Positions 2,928 through 51,908 of a stretch of 64,000 nt of DNA are shown here, piece after piece. The DNA is taken from sequence record MZ574431.2; one strand, written 5' to 3'. Below the pieces are notes generated by a model, which was not told the DNA's origin, searched no databases, and saw nothing but the letters and a program-made list of their open reading frames with translations. A program made the translations under genes and the position numbers. How positions within the stretch are numbered: the first letter of the stretch is position 1; the number at the start of each line of letters is the position of its first letter.

Positions 2928-3130
2928 CGCCCGAACAGCAGATCGCCGAGGCCGGCAAGCGCTACCTCTACTTCAAGAACTGGAAGACCCAGGAGATCGC
3001 GCCCCACCCCATCGACGTCACCCATCGCTCCGATCGCGAGATCGAGCAGATCAAGGGCGGCATGGGCATCAACATCGGCATGGACTGGTTCATCGGTGAC
3101 ACCTTCTACGACCGCGAGGGCAGGTCGTGA
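2924..3130 (+). CDS. hypothetical protein (MTPEQQ...)
   Basis: ATGA overlap; internal start of ORF-track 2717..3130. Confidence 0.75.
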   Translation: MTPEQQIAEAGKRYLYFKNWKTQEIAPHPIDVTHRSDREIEQIKGGMGINIGMDWFIGDTFYDREGRS

Positions 3131-36851: not shown

Positions 36852-39677
36852 GTGACCTCCGCTTCTGCTCTTGGCCTGGATTTCTCCAAGCCGCCGATTT
36901 CTCCCTATCCGCACGAGGAGCGCTCCAAGCGCCGTGAGGGTGTGCGCCGCATGCGCAAGCTCTCCGAGGACGTGCGCTATTTCGTCGATCGCGGCCTGGA
37001 GCCGGACCCGACCATCGCCCAGGTCGCCAACGCCATCACCGGCGTGGCCGATCCGCGCATGCAGGTCAATCTGCTCGATCAGATCGCCGACAAAATCCAG
37101 CACGAGCACCTGGAGAAGCTCTCGGCCCTGGCCAAGAACGATTTCTCGGCCTTCTGCGAGGTGATCAGCCCCGAGGAGCCGCCCGAGAGCCCCTGGCACA
37201 TCTGGCTGACCAACTTCCTGCAAGAGGTCGAGATGAGCCCCGACCTCAACAAGGTCGTGCTCAACGTGCCGCCCGGCCACGCCAAGCCCCTGGCCGACAC
37301 CACCCCGGTGCTGATGGGCGACGGCGCCTACAAGCTCTTGCGCGACATCAAGGTCGGCGATCAGGTCTGGACCCACGCCCAGCGCGCGCGCCCGGTGACG
37401 GCGATCCACGACCAGGGCAAGCTCGCCACCGTCTGGGTCGAGACCACCGCCGGCCGCCGCGTCCAGGCCGCGCTCGACCACCCGTTCCTGGTCAAGCTCG
37501 GCGAGCGCGAGGATGGCAGCCCCATCGCCGAGTGGATCAACGCCGGCGACCTGCGTCCGGGCATGGACCTCGTCGTGGCCGCCCACACCCCGCCCCGCCT
37601 TGTCCATCACCGCTATGACGGCGACCACACCGACTACGACGCCTTCCTGCACCGCGCCCGCATGCTCGGCTACATGGCCATCGGCGGGGCGCTGCACTGG
37701 CAGAAGTCCAAGACCCAGGTCACCCCGTCGCCGGACTTCCGCCTGTCGACCCACAAGCGGCCCTTGATGAAGGCCATCCTGGCCCTGGTCAAGAAGGACC
37801 TTGGCCACCACATGAGCGTCTGCAAGGTCTCCTCGCAGAACACCTTCGTCGCGCGCCTGGGCGTCAAGGCCTTTCGCGATCTCAACGCCGGCGACTGGTT
37901 CACCTACGAGCCCGAAAAGCGCCGCGCCCCGCCGGCCATCTTCACCGCCTCCAAGGAAGAGATCGCCGCCTTCGTCGGCGCGGCCTTCACCCTGCGCGGC
38001 GAGGTCATCCGCCGCCTGAAGGGCAAGAACCTGCGCCTCTACCATCGCTCGCAAGACCTGCTGAGCGACATCCAGAAGCTGTGCGCCTCGCTAGGGGCGT
38101 TTTCCAGCCTCGACAGGGGCGATCCCGACTTTGGCGGCCGACCCTGCTTGAACCTCGATTTCGGGGCTGTGGAGGCCCTCCAGGCGGCTGGAGTGACCTT
38201 CGATGCGGAGACCGACGCCGACCTCGCCGCTCAGCCGCCCAAGGTCCTAGGGGCTGCCTTCGATCCGGGCCTGGACGCGGTGGTCTCGGTCATGCCCGGC
38301 AAGAAGGCTGCGTGCCTGTGCCTGACGGTCGAGGAGGACCACAGCTTCACCGCCGAGACCCTGGTGGTCAAGAACTCCACCTACGCCTCGCGCCTGTTCG
38401 TGGCGTGGCGCCTGGGGCGCGATCCCAACCAGCGCATCATCGGCGGCGGCCACAGCCAGAACTTCGTCGAAAACGAGTTCTCCTCGAAAATCCGCGACAT
38501 CGTCGAGAGCCCCGAATACCAGAAGGTGTTCCCGGCCGTGGTCATCGACCACAAGACCAACGCCAAGCAGCAATGGAAGCTGGCCGGCTACAAGGGCCAG
38601 TATGTCGCGCGGGGCGTGGGCCAGGGCATCCACGGTTTCCGCGCCACCTTCATCTGCGTCGATGACCCCTACTCCAAGATCGAGGACGCCAACAGCCCCG
38701 TTCACCGCCGCAAGGTCGAGCAGTGGTTCGACGCCGACATCGGCTCTCGCGCCCTGCCCGGCTGCAAGACTTTCCTGATCATGACCCGCTTCCATGGTGA
38801 AGACCTCACCAATCACCTGGAAGAGATGAACAAGGTCTTGCCGGCGGATGCACAGTGGAAGATCGTCACTGTACCTGCGATTTGTTTTGACGAAGACACC
38901 GATTTGCTAGGCCGCAAGGTCGGTGAACTTTTGTGGGATTACTATCCCTTGAGCTACTTCGTTGATAAGAAAGTACAATTTGGATTTCTGGGTTTCGCCC
39001 TCACCTACCAACAAGTCTCTTCGGCGGCCAATCCCGACAATATCGCCAGCAAGTTCAATTTCTACGATTATTTGCCTCACGAGTCGCCTGAGGCCCTGGC
39101 CCGCGCCCCCAAGGATCAGTTCGGAAGGCCCCAGCCGGACCTGTCGGATTTTTACCGGCGCACGATCGTCTCGGTCGACACCGCCGCCAAGACCACCGAA
39201 CGGGCCGACTACACCGTGGTCCAGGTCTGGCGCGAGGATTTCAAGGGCAACCACTATCTGGTCCACCAGGACCGCCGGAAGGTGGAATTCAACGACCTGA
39301 TCGCCATGATCGAGGGGCCGGCGCTGAAGTACCGGGCCGATCAAATCCTCGTCGAGGACAAGGGCTCAGGCACCCAGTACCTGCAAAATCGCGGCGCCAC
39401 CGACAGCCAGAAGCGTCAGGCCCCCGCCCCGCTGGTGGCGGTCAATCCAGGCGTGGCCGGCAAGGAGTTCCGCTTCGACGGCGTCACCCCGATGATCACC
39501 GCCGGCGAGGTCTGGCTGCCCAAGAACGCGCCCTGGATCGAGCAGCTTCTGGTCGAGGTGGGCCAGTTCCCCGACAGCGCCCACGATGACCAAGTCGACG
39601 CCCTGTCGCAGTACCTCAACCACGCCAAGAAGAACCGCACCCGCTACGGCAGCCGCAAGATCACCAAGCATACCTGA
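36852..39677 (+). CDS. terL: terminase large subunit, intein-containing
   Basis: Walker A PPGHAK|ST split by intein; ICVDDP Walker B; IMTRFH; nuclease VSVDTA...HDDQVDALSQ. Confidence 0.95.
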   Translation: MTSASALGLDFSKPPISPYPHEERSKRREGVRRMRKLSEDVRYFVDRGLEPDPTIAQVANAITGVADPRMQVNLLDQIADKIQHEHLEKLSALAKNDFSAFCEVISPEEPPESPWHIWLTNFLQEVEMSPDLNKVVLNVPPGHAKPLADTTPVLMGDGAYKLLRDIKVGDQVWTHAQRARPVTAIHDQGKLATVWVETTAGRRVQAALDHPFLVKLGEREDGSPIAEWINAGDLRPGMDLVVAAHTPPRLVHHRYDGDHTDYDAFLHRARMLGYMAIGGALHWQKSKTQVTPSPDFRLSTHKRPLMKAILALVKKDLGHHMSVCKVSSQNTFVARLGVKAFRDLNAGDWFTYEPEKRRAPPAIFTASKEEIAAFVGAAFTLRGEVIRRLKGKNLRLYHRSQDLLSDIQKLCASLGAFSSLDRGDPDFGGRPCLNLDFGAVEALQAAGVTFDAETDADLAAQPPKVLGAAFDPGLDAVVSVMPGKKAACLCLTVEEDHSFTAETLVVKNSTYASRLFVAWRLGRDPNQRIIGGGHSQNFVENEFSSKIRDIVESPEYQKVFPAVVIDHKTNAKQQWKLAGYKGQYVARGVGQGIHGFRATFICVDDPYSKIEDANSPVHRRKVEQWFDADIGSRALPGCKTFLIMTRFHGEDLTNHLEEMNKVLPADAQWKIVTVPAICFDEDTDLLGRKVGELLWDYYPLSYFVDKKVQFGFLGFALTYQQVSSAANPDNIASKFNFYDYLPHESPEALARAPKDQFGRPQPDLSDFYRRTIVSVDTAAKTTERADYTVVQVWREDFKGNHYLVHQDRRKVEFNDLIAMIEGPALKYRADQILVEDKGSGTQYLQNRGATDSQKRQAPAPLVAVNPGVAGKEFRFDGVTPMITAGEVWLPKNAPWIEQLLVEVGQFPDSAHDDQVDALSQYLNHAKKNRTRYGSRKITKHT
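37287..38375 (+). mobile_element. 363-aa intein with degenerate LAGLIDADG domain in TerL Walker A
   Basis: starts PLADTTPVLMGDG, block B AALDHPF, block F CLTVEEDHSF, ends VVKN/S. Confidence 0.9.
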
Positions 39678-40236: not shown

Positions 40237-40773
40237 ATGCCCGTGTTTCGCTATCTGAGCGCCCTTTTCGACCACATCGTCCACTACAAGCTCGCCCCCG
40301 CCCACCTGAAGGTGGAGAACCAGTACGCCCTGGAGCGCCTCAAGGCCGTCGACCGCGAAATCGCCGCTGGCCGCTATGAGGGCGCCGACCTCTATGGCTC
40401 GCGCTCCTGGACCTTCTGGCGCCTGAGCCCCACCGAGCGGCTCAAGCGCGCCAACAAGGCCATCGAAGGCCGCTATGGCCGCTTCCACGCCGGCGTCAAT
40501 CTGGCCGCCCCGATCACCCCGGCCCGTCCTGGCGCGCGCGATCGCCGCGTCCTAGGGCACAACGCCGCCTATGACGCTGATCTGGTCCTGGGCTTTCACG
40601 ATGCGCGCGAGGCCGTCGATGTCGCCCCTGCTCGCATCGAGCGCTATCCGCGCTACAGCGAACTGCCCGCGACCCTGCCGGCCCACCTCGACAAGGACAG
40701 CTTCCTGGACTCCCACCCGGCCGACACCGGCGGGGACCCCTTCGCCACGGCCTCAGGGACCCTGGCCAAATAG
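40237..40773 (+). CDS. hypothetical phage protein
   Basis: RBS GGAG, GC3-rich codons. Confidence 0.8.
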   Translation: MPVFRYLSALFDHIVHYKLAPAHLKVENQYALERLKAVDREIAAGRYEGADLYGSRSWTFWRLSPTERLKRANKAIEGRYGRFHAGVNLAAPITPARPGARDRRVLGHNAAYDADLVLGFHDAREAVDVAPARIERYPRYSELPATLPAHLDKDSFLDSHPADTGGDPFATASGTLAK

Positions 40774-40810
40774 CGTCAGGGACCCTGGCCCAAACCGGTC
40801 AGGGACCCTG
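40753..40810. repeat. 3 x TCAGGGACCCTG, 23-bp period
   Basis: copies at 40753, 40776, 40799; near-palindromic core CAGGG-A-CCCTG. Confidence 0.8.
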
Positions 40811-40972: not shown

Positions 40973-41520
40973 TTCAGGGCAATCATGACAGGGTTTGATT
41001 TCATTGAGGAATTTCGGCCGCTGTCATCTTTCAGAGTGTTTCACGCATGCCCCGCGCCCTCGAAATCCACCCATTTTGGGCGAAATCGCTCGATCTCCTG
41101 ATCTGGACCATCGCCTGGATCATGCTGGCCAAGGACGAGGTGCTCGGACCACCCACCAAGAGGCCGTGGTTGTCAAGACCCGCCTGAAATCGTGTCATAG
41201 ATGGGCGGATTCGTGACAGAGTGGGCGAAAATAAACCCAAAAAGCCTACCAAGGCCCTGAAATCACAGCGAGAATCCTATTCTCCGCCGTTTCTGCGGCG
41301 ATTGGGCCGCCTATTCGCCGCATGTCGCCCCCGATGGCGCCGTACCGCAGCGCTTGACACGCCATTCGCCGCCGATTAGACGAAAGGCTCGGGACCGGCG
41401 AGGGGATGTCCACCCTCTCGCGCAGGACCTGCCCTGGAGCTAGGCTTAAGCCGCCTTCTAGCCTCGCGCTCCAGGGGACCTCGTCGAGCGGCAGGCCCCC
41501 ATGCAGAGCCGCTCGACCCT

Positions 41521-41570
41521 GACGCCCGCCCTGGCCGCCCCCCGCGCGCCTCGGCGGGCGTCTTGCATTT
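41521..41570 (+). terminator. hairpin before repeat arrays
   Basis: GACGCCCGCC / GGCGGGCGTC perfect 10-bp inverted repeat + TTGCATTT. Confidence 0.5.
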
Positions 41571-41581
41571 GGGACCTTAAC

Positions 41582-41814
41582 TTGACGTCGGATCATTTCC
41601 CCCAGGCGCCGGGCCGGCCGATGTCGACGATCCTCGACATTGACAGGTGTCACCGATCGTCGACTTGACGTCGGATCATTTCGCCCAGACTTGACGCAAG
41701 CGCATTTTGCCGGGCGACTTGACGCGAGCGCATTTTTCAAATTTGACGCGAACGCATTTCGAATTTGACGCGCAAGCATTTCGTTTCCAAACTTGACTTG
41801 ACGTCATTTCATTT
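41582..41814 (+). repeat. 7 x TTGACG-N6-CATTT
   Basis: copies at 41582, 41665, 41691, 41719, 41743, 41765, 41798. Confidence 0.85.
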
Positions 41815-41843
41815 CTTGACCTGACCGCGTTCCGATTCCCCTG

Positions 41844-42118
41844 GTTAACGAAGAAGGTTAACGGCCGGTTAACCATTGGGCCGTTAGGGTTAATTTTTAG
41901 GGTTAACACCCATGGTAAACAAACATGGTTAACGCGCCTTAAGGTTAACCGTTAGGGTTAATGCGCGTTAAGGTTAACGCCCTTAGGGTAAAGGGGCCGT
42001 TAGGGTTAACGCCCAGGCCCGCAGCGTTAAGGTTAACCCCGCCAGGGCGCGCGTTAGGGTTAATCCCGAGGCCCTGAGGCGTTAAGGTTAACGAAAAGGG
42101 CCAAAAATTAGGGTTAAG
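41844..42118. repeat. dense array of about 11 TTA(A/G)GGTTAA units plus CtrA-type boxes
   Basis: direct copies 41882-42118; TTAA-N7-TTAA at 41858; TTAACCAT at 41869. Confidence 0.85.
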
Positions 42119-42124
42119 ACGCGG

Positions 42125-42240
42125 AAAATCGCCCAAAATCGTGGATTTTGGGGTCAAAATGGCCATTTTTAGCGGTTTTTCGGCCGATTTTGGGCCTTCT
42201 AGCCCGTTTTTGGGTTAATTTCGGCGAGTCGCCCGGTTTT
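42125..42240. other. helically phased A/T tracts (curved DNA)
   Basis: A4/T4-5 tracts at 42125, 42135, 42146, 42156, 42166, 42176, 42188, 42207, 42217, 42237. Confidence 0.6.
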
Positions 42241-42443
42241 GGGTGTGCCCTGAGCGGCGGCGCGCGACCTGTCGTGATCCCAGGTCGCGCGCGGGTCAAT
42301 GCAGGAGCCAGAGCAGGAACGCCAGCGTCAGCAGTGACCATCCGTTCAAAAGCTTCAGGCGCTCGCCTCCTTGGTTGCCGTGGCCGCTCGCCACGTTCAG
42401 ACCCTAGCGCATAAGAAAAGTGTTGCCAAGCCCAACAATGCAG

Positions 42444-42471
42444 TTGACAGCATAATTCTGCTATGCGACAA
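42444..42471 (+). promoter_or_regulatory. cassette promoter a
   Basis: TTGACA-GCAT-N9-ATGCGACAA. Confidence 0.8.
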
Positions 42472-42499
42472 AGGCTCATCGAAACGAGGAGCCGCCCAC

Positions 42500-42640
42500 A
42501 TGTGGGAAGTCAAGACCTTCAAGACCCGCCTCGCCAAGGAGGCCTGGATCGCCCGCAATGAGGCGCGTTACCAGATCGTCGAGATCGTGGTCGCCAACGC
42601 CTACGGCGTCGAATTCAAGCCCCTGCGACGCATCGGCTAG
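42500..42640 (+). CDS. 46-aa hypothetical protein
   Basis: RBS GAGGAG. Confidence 0.75.
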   Translation: MWEVKTFKTRLAKEAWIARNEARYQIVEIVVANAYGVEFKPLRRIG

Positions 42641-42659
42641 ACACGAAAGGAAAGCCCCC

Positions 42660-42851
42660 ATGATTCCGCCCGAGGTCCTCAACCCGCGCGACTACTGGAC
42701 CCCCATCGCCACGCGTCAGAAAGCCGAGGCCCTCGCCGAACGCTACGCGGTGGACGACTACGAGGCGCCCGGAACCTACACCGTCGAAGAAAAGGGCGCG
42801 GCCTTCGCCATCGCCTATTACGAAGACGGCGAATTCATCGCCTACGTCTAG
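42660..42851 (+). CDS. hypothetical protein
   Basis: RBS AAGGA. Confidence 0.75.
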   Translation: MIPPEVLNPRDYWTPIATRQKAEALAERYAVDDYEAPGTYTVEEKGAAFAIAYYEDGEFIAYV

Positions 42852-42856
42852 GCCAG

Positions 42857-42890
42857 ACCCGGCGCCCCCTCCCCAGGGCGCCGGGTTTTT
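42857..42890 (+). terminator. rho-independent terminator
   Basis: ACCCGGCGCCC/GGGCGCCGGGT + TTTT. Confidence 0.85.
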
Positions 42891-42904
42891 CCTGGCGCCC
42901 AGCC

Positions 42905-42978
42905 GTTAAGGTTAACCCGGCGTTAAGGTTAACGCCCCATTAGGGTTAACGCCGCGTTAGGGTTAATCGGCCATTAAC
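42905..42978. promoter_or_regulatory. tandem CtrA-type boxes, 17-bp period
   Basis: TTAA-gg-TTAA-N7-TTAA-gg-TTAA-N7-TTAG-gg-TTAA-N7-TTAG-gg-TTAA-N7-TTAA. Confidence 0.75.
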
Positions 42979-43008
42979 CCTCCAGGCGAAAATAGTGCAA
43001 GAAAGCGG

Positions 43009-43036
43009 TTGACTGCATATCAGGCCTATGCGACAA
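43009..43036 (+). promoter_or_regulatory. cassette promoter b
   Basis: TTGACT-GCAT-N9-ATGCGACAA. Confidence 0.8.
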
Positions 43037-43064
43037 GAGGGCGTCCCCAACGAGGAGGCCTCTC

Positions 43065-43700
43065 ATGGCTCTGCCGGAACACCTTTTCATCGCCGATCAC
43101 GGCGACCTCTACGATACCAGCGTCGAAGGCTGGAGCGCCAAGGCGCCCCTGCGCCGCGCCTATCGCGTCGCCCTGCCCAAAATCGAGAGCATGGGCCACG
43201 TCAAGGCCGCGCTGCGCTATGGCGACACGACTGACCTGGGCGGCTATCCGCTCTACTTCGTCACGCGCGATGGCGCGGCGCTGTCGTTCGAGAGCGCCCG
43301 CAAGATGCTCTATCAGATCGCGCTCGACTTCCAAGCCGACGCCTCGACCGGCTGGCGCATCGCCGCCGTCCAGATCAACTATGAGGACGGCGACTTGCGT
43401 TGCGATCATAGTGGCGAGCGCATCCCCTGCGCCTACAATGACCCCGAAGTCATGGCCTGGGCGAGCGGCTCCAACGTGTCGGGCTTCATGCCGGACAACG
43501 AGCCTTCCCATCATGCGACCTGGGAAGAGGCCCGCGACGCGCTCAAGCAAGACATCGAATTCGCGCGCGAGGCCTGCGAGGAGGGGAGCGAGGAGGACGG
43601 CCAATTCGCCCACGTCCTCGACGTCCTGGCCACGCTCCAAGAGGGCGCGGAATTCAACTACGGCGCCAACGGTTACCGTTGGTGGGTCGAAAAGCTCTAG
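43065..43700 (+). CDS. two-domain hypothetical phage protein
   Basis: GGYPLYFVTRDG...LRCDHSGERIPCAY; second domain GFMPDNEP. Confidence 0.85.
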   Translation: MALPEHLFIADHGDLYDTSVEGWSAKAPLRRAYRVALPKIESMGHVKAALRYGDTTDLGGYPLYFVTRDGAALSFESARKMLYQIALDFQADASTGWRIAAVQINYEDGDLRCDHSGERIPCAYNDPEVMAWASGSNVSGFMPDNEPSHHATWEEARDALKQDIEFAREACEEGSEEDGQFAHVLDVLATLQEGAEFNYGANGYRWWVEKL

Positions 43701-43714
43701 CGAAAGGAACGCCC

Positions 43715-43861
43715 ATGTTCATCCTGATTGTCGGCAATCCCGTCGATGGCTACGCCTATTATGGTCCCTTCCATGACCATGACGATGCGACCAACTATGC
43801 CGAGAACACCGGCACGGAAGGAAACCCTTGGTGGGTCGCGCCGCTTGAAGAGGCCGAGTAA
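43715..43861 (+). CDS. 48-aa hypothetical protein
   Basis: RBS AAGGA; GNPVDGYAYYGPF. Confidence 0.75.
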   Translation: MFILIVGNPVDGYAYYGPFHDHDDATNYAENTGTEGNPWWVAPLEEAE

Positions 43862-43898
43862 CCCCGCGATCTAAACCCCCTTTAAGAGGAGACCGCCC

Positions 43899-44201
43899 AT
43901 GGGCGCCGACTGTTTTGTGACCACCGCCAAGGGCAAGAACGCCAAGGAAGCGTTTCGCGACGCCGTGGACGAAGCCCAGTATAAATATGGCCATGGTGGC
44001 TATACCGGAACCATCGCCGAAAAGCACGAATTCGCCATGGACAAGGGTTTCAAGCCCGACCCCGCGAGCGAAAAGACGGTGATCGAGCAAGCCCAAGACT
44101 ACGCCTGGACCAAGGTCGAGGACGAAGACAAATATGGGCCTGCCGTGTGCCTGGACCTGGGCGAAGGTCAATTCCTGTTCTACGGCGTCGCCAAATGCTA
44201 G
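43899..44201 (+). CDS. hypothetical phage protein
   Basis: RBS GAGGAG; GHGGYTGTIAEK. Confidence 0.85.
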   Translation: MGADCFVTTAKGKNAKEAFRDAVDEAQYKYGHGGYTGTIAEKHEFAMDKGFKPDPASEKTVIEQAQDYAWTKVEDEDKYGPAVCLDLGEGQFLFYGVAKC

Positions 44202-51519: not shown

Positions 51520-51908
51520 ATGGCCCTAAACACCGCCGGCCTCGTCGCCCGTCTGCGCGAGGTTCTCGCCGCCGCCCGTCCCTGACCGAATGGGCCAAGG
51601 GGCGCGGTCTACAGCATCAAAACGTGTCCGCCGTGGCGCGTGGCGACACCGTGCCGCAAACCTCGATCGCCACGGCCCTGGGCTTGCGCCGGGTGACCAT
51701 CCAAGCCTATCTGGCGCCCAGTGAAGCCCTGCCCCTGCTTCCGCCGGGCTGGGAAGAGGTGCAGCCCGGATCGGCGACCCCGGTCGGCTGGACCCCTCGC
51801 GACAAGGCCGCCCAACCCATCCCGCAAAGCGGTTCGGCCGATCGCGCCGCCCGCGCCATCCGCCTGGAGCGGCTGCGAAACGAAAAAGAAATGCGAGAAA
51901 GCCGTTGA
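51520..51908 (+). CDS. Cro/XRE-like HTH protein (apparent frameshift at 51575-77)
   Basis: corrected reading APSLTEWAKGRGLQHQNVSAVARGDTVPQTSIATALGL. Confidence 0.6.

Follow-up and report, generated by a model that had tools for sequence, protein, structure and literature searches.

A conserved direct-repeat array beside the large terminase gene of Caulobacter phage J4 as a candidate cis-acting CtrA landing pad

CtrA sites in phages and their hosts

The closest described systems to the array treated here are the CtrA-site clusters of LPEG phages, which share with it the phage group, an intergenic location in direct terminal repeat (DTR) DNA and a CtrA-bearing alphaproteobacterial host (Mascolo et al., 2022; PMC9437464). 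Such clusters are already published for its relatives, and the array is most likely a CtrA docking platform of that kind. In phiCbK-like phages, CcrSC and CcrBL9 being among those named, predicted CtrA sites concentrate in the intergenic DNA of the DTRs (PMC9437464). CtrA~P shifts EMSA probes from phages Delta, phiCbK and Cp1R7A-A1, and the Delta assay includes a cold-competitor control and no mutant probe (PMC9437464). CtrA represses the gap promoter of Delta, whose fragment shows a 4.5-6 fold derepression when CtrA is temperature-sensitive (ctrA-ts), and activates phiCbK promoters (PMC9437464). Delta is reported to be circularly permuted, and "lytic deferment" has been proposed for the related phages (PMC9437464). 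The highest-scoring sites under the published CtrA matrix read GTTAAC-N5-(G/A)TTAAC (PMC9437464). Only 17-nt TTAA-N7-TTAA sites are scored in that study, and its phiCbK tests concern promoter-proximal boxes, not the gap array (PMC9437464). Its text makes no mention of a 10-12-nt doublet unit, a conserved gap array or titration, nor does it describe a single-strand, non-N7 arrangement, a cross-genus conservation on the terL side, or adjacent TTGACG-N6-CATT and A-tract arrays.

Host loci offer further parallels. Cori resembles the phage array in its clustered CtrA sites and its non-coding, relatively A+T-rich DNA, and binding there silences a cis function in swarmer cells. The Cori sites differ, however, in being described as full TTAA-N7-TTAA-type boxes, and neither DnaA boxes nor an initiator were identified in the phage array region. 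The pilA promoter carries multiple non-consensus CtrA sites at irregular spacings (3, 31 and 78 bp, with N6 variants), the upstream ones repressing and delaying transcription and raising sensitivity to the CtrA level (PMC11264516). Four sites lie within ~150 bp of the promoter at pilA, whereas the phage array sets 16 cores on one strand at 326-600 bp upstream. In Bacillus phage phi29, clustered Spo0A boxes, sites for a host developmental regulator, suspend the lytic programme, a parallel already cited for the LPEG phages (PMC9437464); regulator, phage type and site architecture all differ, and the likeness is one of analogy only.

Source phage and terminal repeat

The window, a stretch of 64,000 nucleotides from record MZ574431.2, derives from Caulobacter phage J4. 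Its positions 41000-44000 match that record at 100% identity, phages C1, C2, BL47 and RB23 at near-identity, and parts of CcrSC and CcrBL9 at 75-81%. All of these phages belong to the genus Bertelyvirus, and their records give Caulobacter vibrioides CB15 as host. The start sequence of ctrA, taken from a primer of Mascolo et al., is present in Caulobacter genomes, so the host carries CtrA.

Match coordinates place the window at 248001-312000 of the 312-kb J4 genome, with window position 41000 corresponding to J4 1386 and 289000. The DTR, annotated as a repeat_region, measures 24,723 bp, and 263 kb of unique sequence separate its two copies. The right copy, an early-gene region, runs from 39616 to 64000 (+), where it is clipped by the window end, and begins within the 3' end of the large terminase gene terL (36852-39677). 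The genes of the DTR all point away from its left end, and GC skew is monotonic over the window, with no switch. A third conserved family of repeats, tandem and built on CCAGGGACC(CTGG), is found close to where the DTR begins in J4, CcrColossus and phiCbK (window 40753-40810; 350-490 in locus L007; 4590-4700 in locus L005).

The 10-mer array

The window contains 46 copies of the 10-mer TTARGGTTAA where 0.02 would be expected (at most 1 in any of 100 shuffles), and every one of them stands at or after 40170, within the DTR. The whole J4 record holds 95, of which 92 fall in the two DTR copies (46 each) and 3 in the 263-kb unique part. This concentration in the intergenic DNA of the DTRs is the skewed distribution that characterizes phage CtrA-box clusters.

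The array spans 41843-42117 (+) in the window and 2230-2503 in J4 coordinates, 2.2 kb inside the annotated left end, and sits in a 1.3-kb gap without annotated genes. Exact copies start at 41884, 41897, 41939, 41952, 41968, 42000, 42027, 42054, 42082 and 42108, all on the plus strand, and a single-mismatch copy, TTAGGGTAAA, lies at 41983. These ten exact copies and one near copy are among 16 GGTWAA cores, which follow one another at 13, 11, 21, 13, 13, 13, 16, 13, 16, 15, 17, 27, 27, 28 and 26 bp. The 275 bp thus defined hold 18 perfect TTAA as well as the 16 cores, yet only one N7 and two N6 boxes. The sole canonical CtrA box, TTAA-N7-TTAA at 41858-41872 (+), overlaps one copy of TTAACCAT at 41869; a second copy stands at 41925 on the minus strand. 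The published CtrA matrix assigns a score of 17.2 to GTTAACGGCGGATTAAC, the CcrSC orthologue of this box, and three distinct sites are predicted in the orthologous CcrSC array, at 3084, 3154/3155 and 3183/3184 (PMC9437464, Table S6).

A preliminary description of this DNA had counted about 11 direct copies, which agrees with the ten exact and one near copy once its starts, 1-2 nt early, are adjusted. The 26-28-bp period that it gave for the last five was measured as 27, 27, 28 and 26 bp, and both the N7 box that it placed at 41858 and the two orientations of TTAACCAT were found. The array is indeed very dense, as it had said, and its "dozens of sites" per genome correspond to the 46 per DTR copy; the nearest promoter, which it put at about 300 bp, is represented by a promoter-like site at 42444, 326 bp past the array. 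It erred in setting the array at the start of the repeat region: from the DTR start at 39616, four small genes and one 10-mer copy (40170) precede the array.

The repeat unit and its relation to CtrA sites

Alignment of the 46 copies yields the consensus c(34/46) G(39/46) TTA R GG TTAA C(36/46). The full unit, cGTTARGGTTAAC, can be written as GTTA(A/G)G plus GTTAAC, that is, as two abutting CtrA half-site hexamers (GTTAAS). Position 4 is G in 19 of the 46 J4 copies, which breaks the inner TTAA, and G is rare at this position in CcrSC and CcrBL9. The GG of the unit is invariant, whereas canonical CtrA boxes carry no information there. Of 12 palindromes, eight join an A unit to a G unit. Compared with CcrSC and CcrBL9, the J4 lineage carries at 42000-42107 a duplication of 54 bp that comprises a G-type and an A-type unit.

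Between adjacent DTR units the favoured spacings are 17 bp, with 13 pairs, and 26-28 bp, with nine. Outside the array, the 17-bp pairs are mostly inverted (10 pairs, with 3 direct), and further direct pairs stand at 26-28 bp. These two spacings set facing TTAA 11 and ~21 bp apart, one and two helical turns respectively, and 11 bp is the spacing of the CtrA box. The main array spacings of 13 and then 26-28 bp are not those of a CtrA dimer.

A single regulatory niche is occupied by two kinds of DTR promoter. Those of Bertelyvirus carry 10-mer palindromes centred on a TTAA-N7-TTAA-type box, and a CtrA site is predicted on the inner or central box of every CcrSC palindrome (PMC9437464, Table S6). 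Those of phiCbK and Colossusvirus carry canonical TTAA-N7-TTAA boxes instead of the 10-mer. Compared across genera at the level of sequence, the 10-mer word appears to be interchangeable with canonical boxes at DTR promoters. The array itself, however, is not a set of ordinary CtrA boxes. That the 10-mer is kept in the gap cluster of phiCbK, CcrPW and CcrColossus while their promoters use ordinary boxes hints at a second binder or binding mode.

CtrA might be joined on the array by SciP, for which ChIP returns the motif RTTAACCATR (Fumeaux et al., 2014; PMC4083442). Read as its reverse complement, GTTAACCYTAA, the unit agrees with nine of the ten positions of this motif, and the array contains the two exact copies of TTAACCAT. 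At the base after CC the SciP motif has A, where the phage word has C or T, and the ChIP data leave open whether SciP alone binds DNA (PMC4083442).

Elements flanking the array

A terminator-like hairpin at 41546-41571 (+) closes the leftmost small operon ahead of the repeat arrays, and a terminator or hairpin occupies the equivalent place in phiCbK, where it is annotated, and in CcrSC and CcrBL9. The DNA that leads directly into the 10-mer array, 41582-41813 (+), carries eight TTGACG-N6-CATT(TC) units: seven are exact, the other has one mismatch, and each includes a perfect -35-type hexamer. Exact copies are confined to the gap in J4, phiCbK, CcrPW and CcrColossus, and CcrSC has one extra exact copy ~340 bp upstream of its gap. 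As real promoters the TTGACG units were rejected, with no sigma-70-type promoter predicted among them and no -10 element at a usable distance. In an alignment of J4, RB23, CcrSC and CcrBL9, the 10-mer and TTGACG units are conserved and the spacers between them are divergent.

On the other side, seven A4-5/T4-5 tracts phased at 10-12 bp lie at 42125-42192, between the array and the first early promoter, and are predicted to form intrinsically curved DNA. CcrSC and CcrBL9 have stronger phased A-tracts (GAAAATCAGC-type) at the equivalent place, and the Delta array adjoins phased A-tracts of a GAAAATC type. A G+C-rich hairpin with a 12-bp stem, read from the sequence at 42260-42292, separates the curved DNA from a minus-strand micro-ORF; its position is conserved in CcrSC and CcrBL9. 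The micro-ORF (42296-42394, -; ~32-37 aa), unannotated in J4, reads towards the array and is conserved with synonymous changes in J4, CcrSC and CcrBL9. It ends ...LKLLNGWSL(L/A)(T/A)LA(F/L)LLW(L/I)LH, and its product is probably a single-pass membrane micro-protein.

No known RNA family matches the array, and matches elsewhere are weak and below threshold. One of these, to the alphaproteobacterial sRNA family ar14 at 42791-42893 (+), reaches 30 bits where the gathering threshold is 58.8; it covers the terminator region that follows the second small gene and probably reflects mere terminator resemblance. A CsrB-like sponge RNA was dropped as a candidate because neither a promoter nor a terminator frames the array and because the word serves in either orientation at other places of the DTR.

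Early promoters and a second cluster

The promoter-like site at 42444-42470 (+; TTGACAGCAT..ATGCGACAA) is the first of 19 copies per DTR of an early promoter of the form TTGAC-N12-16-ATGCGAYR. These span 42444-63928 in the window, always on the plus strand, and none occurs in the 263 kb of unique J4 sequence; the DTR therefore constitutes a separate transcription class. At 12 of the 19, the promoter-proximal 10-mer unit starts 50-77 nt upstream. A second cluster, at 42906-42966 (+), consists of four direct 10-mers at an exact 17-bp spacing, which creates TTAA-N7-TTAA-type boxes between neighbouring units, and the promoter at 43009 follows it at a distance of 52-103 nt.

One early gene travels with the arrays. 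Its product, the 64-aa protein P0001 (63071-63265, +; TFHHNLMSKLD...NMRG...), has homologues just past the gap of Delta (at ~1583-1762 in that genome) and on three metagenomic contigs that bear arrays, L132, L158 and L186. It matches no Pfam or PHROG family.

Distribution among phages

The array lies 1.3-2.3 kb downstream of terL in phiCbK, CcrPW, CcrColossus, CcrSC, CcrBL9, Lacusarx, Bajun and Kikimora, and 1.4-3.3 kb inside the terminal repeat in phages where a repeat is annotated. The DTR copies of CcrSC and CcrBL9 hold 76 of 80 and 62 of 65 10-mers, respectively. In phiCbK, CcrPW and CcrColossus, whose TerL is ~43-44% identical to that of J4, a single cluster of five to seven mostly same-strand TTARGGTWAA occupies a non-coding gap 1.5-2.1 kb inside the DTR and always directly follows a TTGACG-N6-CATT array. 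These three phages have 6-9 10-mer copies per DTR, limited to its first 2.2 kb save for two CcrColossus variants towards the other end of that record, and nearly all within the gap cluster; an outlying minus-strand copy in phiCbK stands nearer the DTR start. In CcrColossus (NC_019406.1), TTAGGGTAAA occurs at 273737 and 273814 (-), ~3.4 kb upstream of terL, these being the sole non-gap copies there.

Phages of other hosts carry the same word. Sphingobium phage Lacusarx has 13 copies near terL, with a cluster 1.4 kb downstream of it, and Brevundimonas phage Bajun has six, with a cluster 1.3 kb downstream. Mesorhizobium phage Cp1R7A-A1 has six dispersed copies 1-6 kb from terL, and Brevundimonas phage Kikimora has 55 within 36 kb. 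All four keep the 10-mer within the terL-proximal region. Brevundimonas phage Delta, which is unrelated, has all seven of its copies in its 1.3-kb gap region; it shares with J4 only metabolic, replication-type and structural genes. The 81-bp EMSA probe from Delta maps to this gap and holds two exact 10-mers and one near copy. Many uncultured viral contigs (49-64% GC) also contain 10-mer clusters, of up to 27 copies. Comparison of the J4 ORFs with 27 array-bearing loci and the whole Delta genome found no shared DNA-binding protein.

The constant place of the array downstream of terL in Bertelyvirus, phiCbK, Colossusvirus, Lacusarx, Bajun and Kikimora might suggest a signal for packaging or DNA entry, recognized by the terminase small subunit (TerS) or serving as a stop, anchor or ratchet at the leading end during ejection. 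TerS-binding sites typically consist of direct repeats beside curved DNA, a combination that the locus reproduces, and genes that read away from the left end of the DTR are consistent with entry of that end first. Such a signal is nevertheless highly improbable here. A site of the pac or cos type would stand at or next to the genome end, and the terminus annotated in the record is 2.2 kb from the array. The word also recurs at dozens of promoters in Bertelyvirus and Kikimora, unlike a pac site, and it is present in Delta despite the reported circular permutation of that phage.

Use of the word in host genomes

Host genomes make no comparable use of the word. Each of five Caulobacter genomes contains it zero to two times, at unrelated places. 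Across 81 Caulobacteraceae genomes there are 147 matches against 209 for a reversed control, with a median of one per genome; no arrays occur among them, the closest two copies being 281 bp apart. A host role for the word was rejected on these grounds, its occurrences in the 5 and 81 genomes being scattered, at chance level and in non-orthologous places. The 10-mer word belongs to the phages and not to the host.

A word foreign to the host, at spacings that misfit CtrA dimers, is what might be expected if the 10-mers, and perhaps the TTGACG-N6-CATT units, were iterons for a phage-encoded DNA-binding protein, forming an origin or a partition or handcuffing-type site in which the resemblance to CtrA half-sites is incidental or secondary. 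The setting is suggestive: the same-strand direct repeats, in two arrays, lie by phased A/T tracts in the lowest-GC part of the DTR (0.58-0.59 versus ~0.65), much as the repeats of an iteron origin adjoin A+T-rich DNA that melts easily. Each repeat family is present about once per genome unit in three genera, as expected of a cis-acting site. All array phages save Delta share ancestry (TerL 32-46% identical), which makes a conserved phage binder possible. Iterons nonetheless seem unlikely. No candidate binder emerged, and a search of the local loci and the J4 and Delta genomes found no protein shared among the array loci, as a co-inherited initiator would be. An ORF suggested to encode an HTH (XRE/Cro) binder (51624-51908) was discarded, as it matched neither Pfam nor PHROG. 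To keep an identical 10-mer both across TerL identities of 32-46% and in unrelated Delta, a phage protein would need an unusually frozen specificity. GC skew does not turn in the window, and DNA that holds the word is shifted by CtrA~P.

A broader proposal, and an unlikely one, takes the terminator, the perfect -35-type TTGACG array, the GTTAAS doublet array and the curved DNA as one dedicated module for host-factor capture. Such a module would predate the phage genera of Caulobacter, Brevundimonas and Sphingobium and would bind CtrA non-canonically through half-site doublets, in a mode never used by the host genome itself and for a role other than promoter control. At the leading end it could gate the start of replication, help to pull DNA in or titrate CtrA, and in the last case would, once amplified, force the host out of G1.

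Function of the array

The best reading of the array is as the core of a conserved non-coding control region that heads the early-gene terminal repeat. More specifically, there is roughly an even chance that it acts in cis as a CtrA landing pad, perhaps together with SciP, that gates early phage functions.

CtrA is the best candidate for a binder, on several grounds. The unit carries a CtrA half-site, the preferred spacings give helical phasing of 11 and 21 bp, and the word appears to substitute for canonical boxes at DTR promoters. CtrA~P also shifts DNA that holds the word (PMC9437464). Phages of four host genera share exactly the same word, which marks the terL-proximal early region in those of Caulobacter, Brevundimonas, Sphingobium and Mesorhizobium as well as the gap of Delta, and invariance of this degree is easier to reconcile with a conserved binder from the host than with a phage protein that evolves fast. 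That the compared array loci have no protein in common likewise counts towards a CtrA landing pad. The preliminary description had already proposed CtrA, and this part of it stands, given the half-site GTTAAC in the unit, the predicted sites in the CcrSC array and the 10-mers in the CtrA~P-shifted Delta probe. Its premise, a dependence of Caulobacter cell-cycle control on CtrA titration, does not agree with the published accounts consulted, in which control is exerted by phosphorylation, proteolysis and resynthesis. As for CtrA binding to the J4 array itself, its stoichiometry and the direction of its effect, these we only infer.

In the mechanism envisaged, phage DNA would enter swarmer or late-predivisional cells, as is thought to be the case, where CtrA~P is dominant. 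CtrA~P might then load on the 16 same-strand half-site cores, possibly with SciP, and the adjacent phased A/T tracts could bend the resulting assembly towards the first early promoter. Acting in cis, this assembly would either silence early transcription or set the time at which it starts, and perhaps do so for replication too, according to the cell-cycle state of the host. Gating of this kind would follow the logic of the "lytic deferment" proposed for related phages (PMC9437464).

Several observations speak against this reading. The 16 cores form only one N7 and two N6 boxes; 19 of 46 copies have G as their fourth base, and the GG is invariant; and host genomes do not use the word above chance. 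The next promoter is 326 bp away. In phiCbK, CcrPW and CcrColossus the 10-mer is almost wholly restricted to the gap and promoters use ordinary boxes, and the published Delta EMSA lacks a mutant probe. The non-N7 spacings, the invariant GG, the G at position 4, the word kept in the gap cluster and its non-use by the host are the reasons why the landing pad is rated no higher.

If CtrA does bind, the sites could in principle act in trans, as a sponge that, once replication had raised the high-affinity sites to thousands, would soak up CtrA~P, release the G1 block and rewire the CtrA regulon. The packaged genome brings 92 copies in its two DTRs, and since CtrA activates only ~100 host genes (PMC11264516), replicated phage DNA would outnumber the host targets. 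Many units have neither a dimer-spaced partner nor a nearby promoter, as decoys might, and the 54-bp two-unit duplication in the J4 lineage represents a recent enlargement of the array. A sponge is still very unlikely: the published effects are exerted in cis on adjoining promoters, by repression in Delta and activation in phiCbK, and the units 50-77 nt upstream of the -35 element at 12 of 19 promoters point to an operator function. With 6-9 copies per DTR, moreover, phiCbK, CcrPW and CcrColossus have too few for titration, yet the array is conserved in them.

Significance

Should the cis-acting CtrA landing pad prove to be just another CtrA operator cluster, the result would be an ordinary one. 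The published picture of many CtrA boxes in the DTR is here reduced to one exact, mutable word, a single array of which is kept beside terL across several phage genera, and Caulobacteraceae hosts do not use this word. Together, the exact word, its terL-side conservation and its non-use by the host give EMSA, ChIP and deletion experiments a precise target of 275 bp, with which cis gating, replication control and titration could be separated. phiCbK-like phages are standard tools for the study of the Caulobacter cell cycle, and the array may bear on how they read or reset that cycle.
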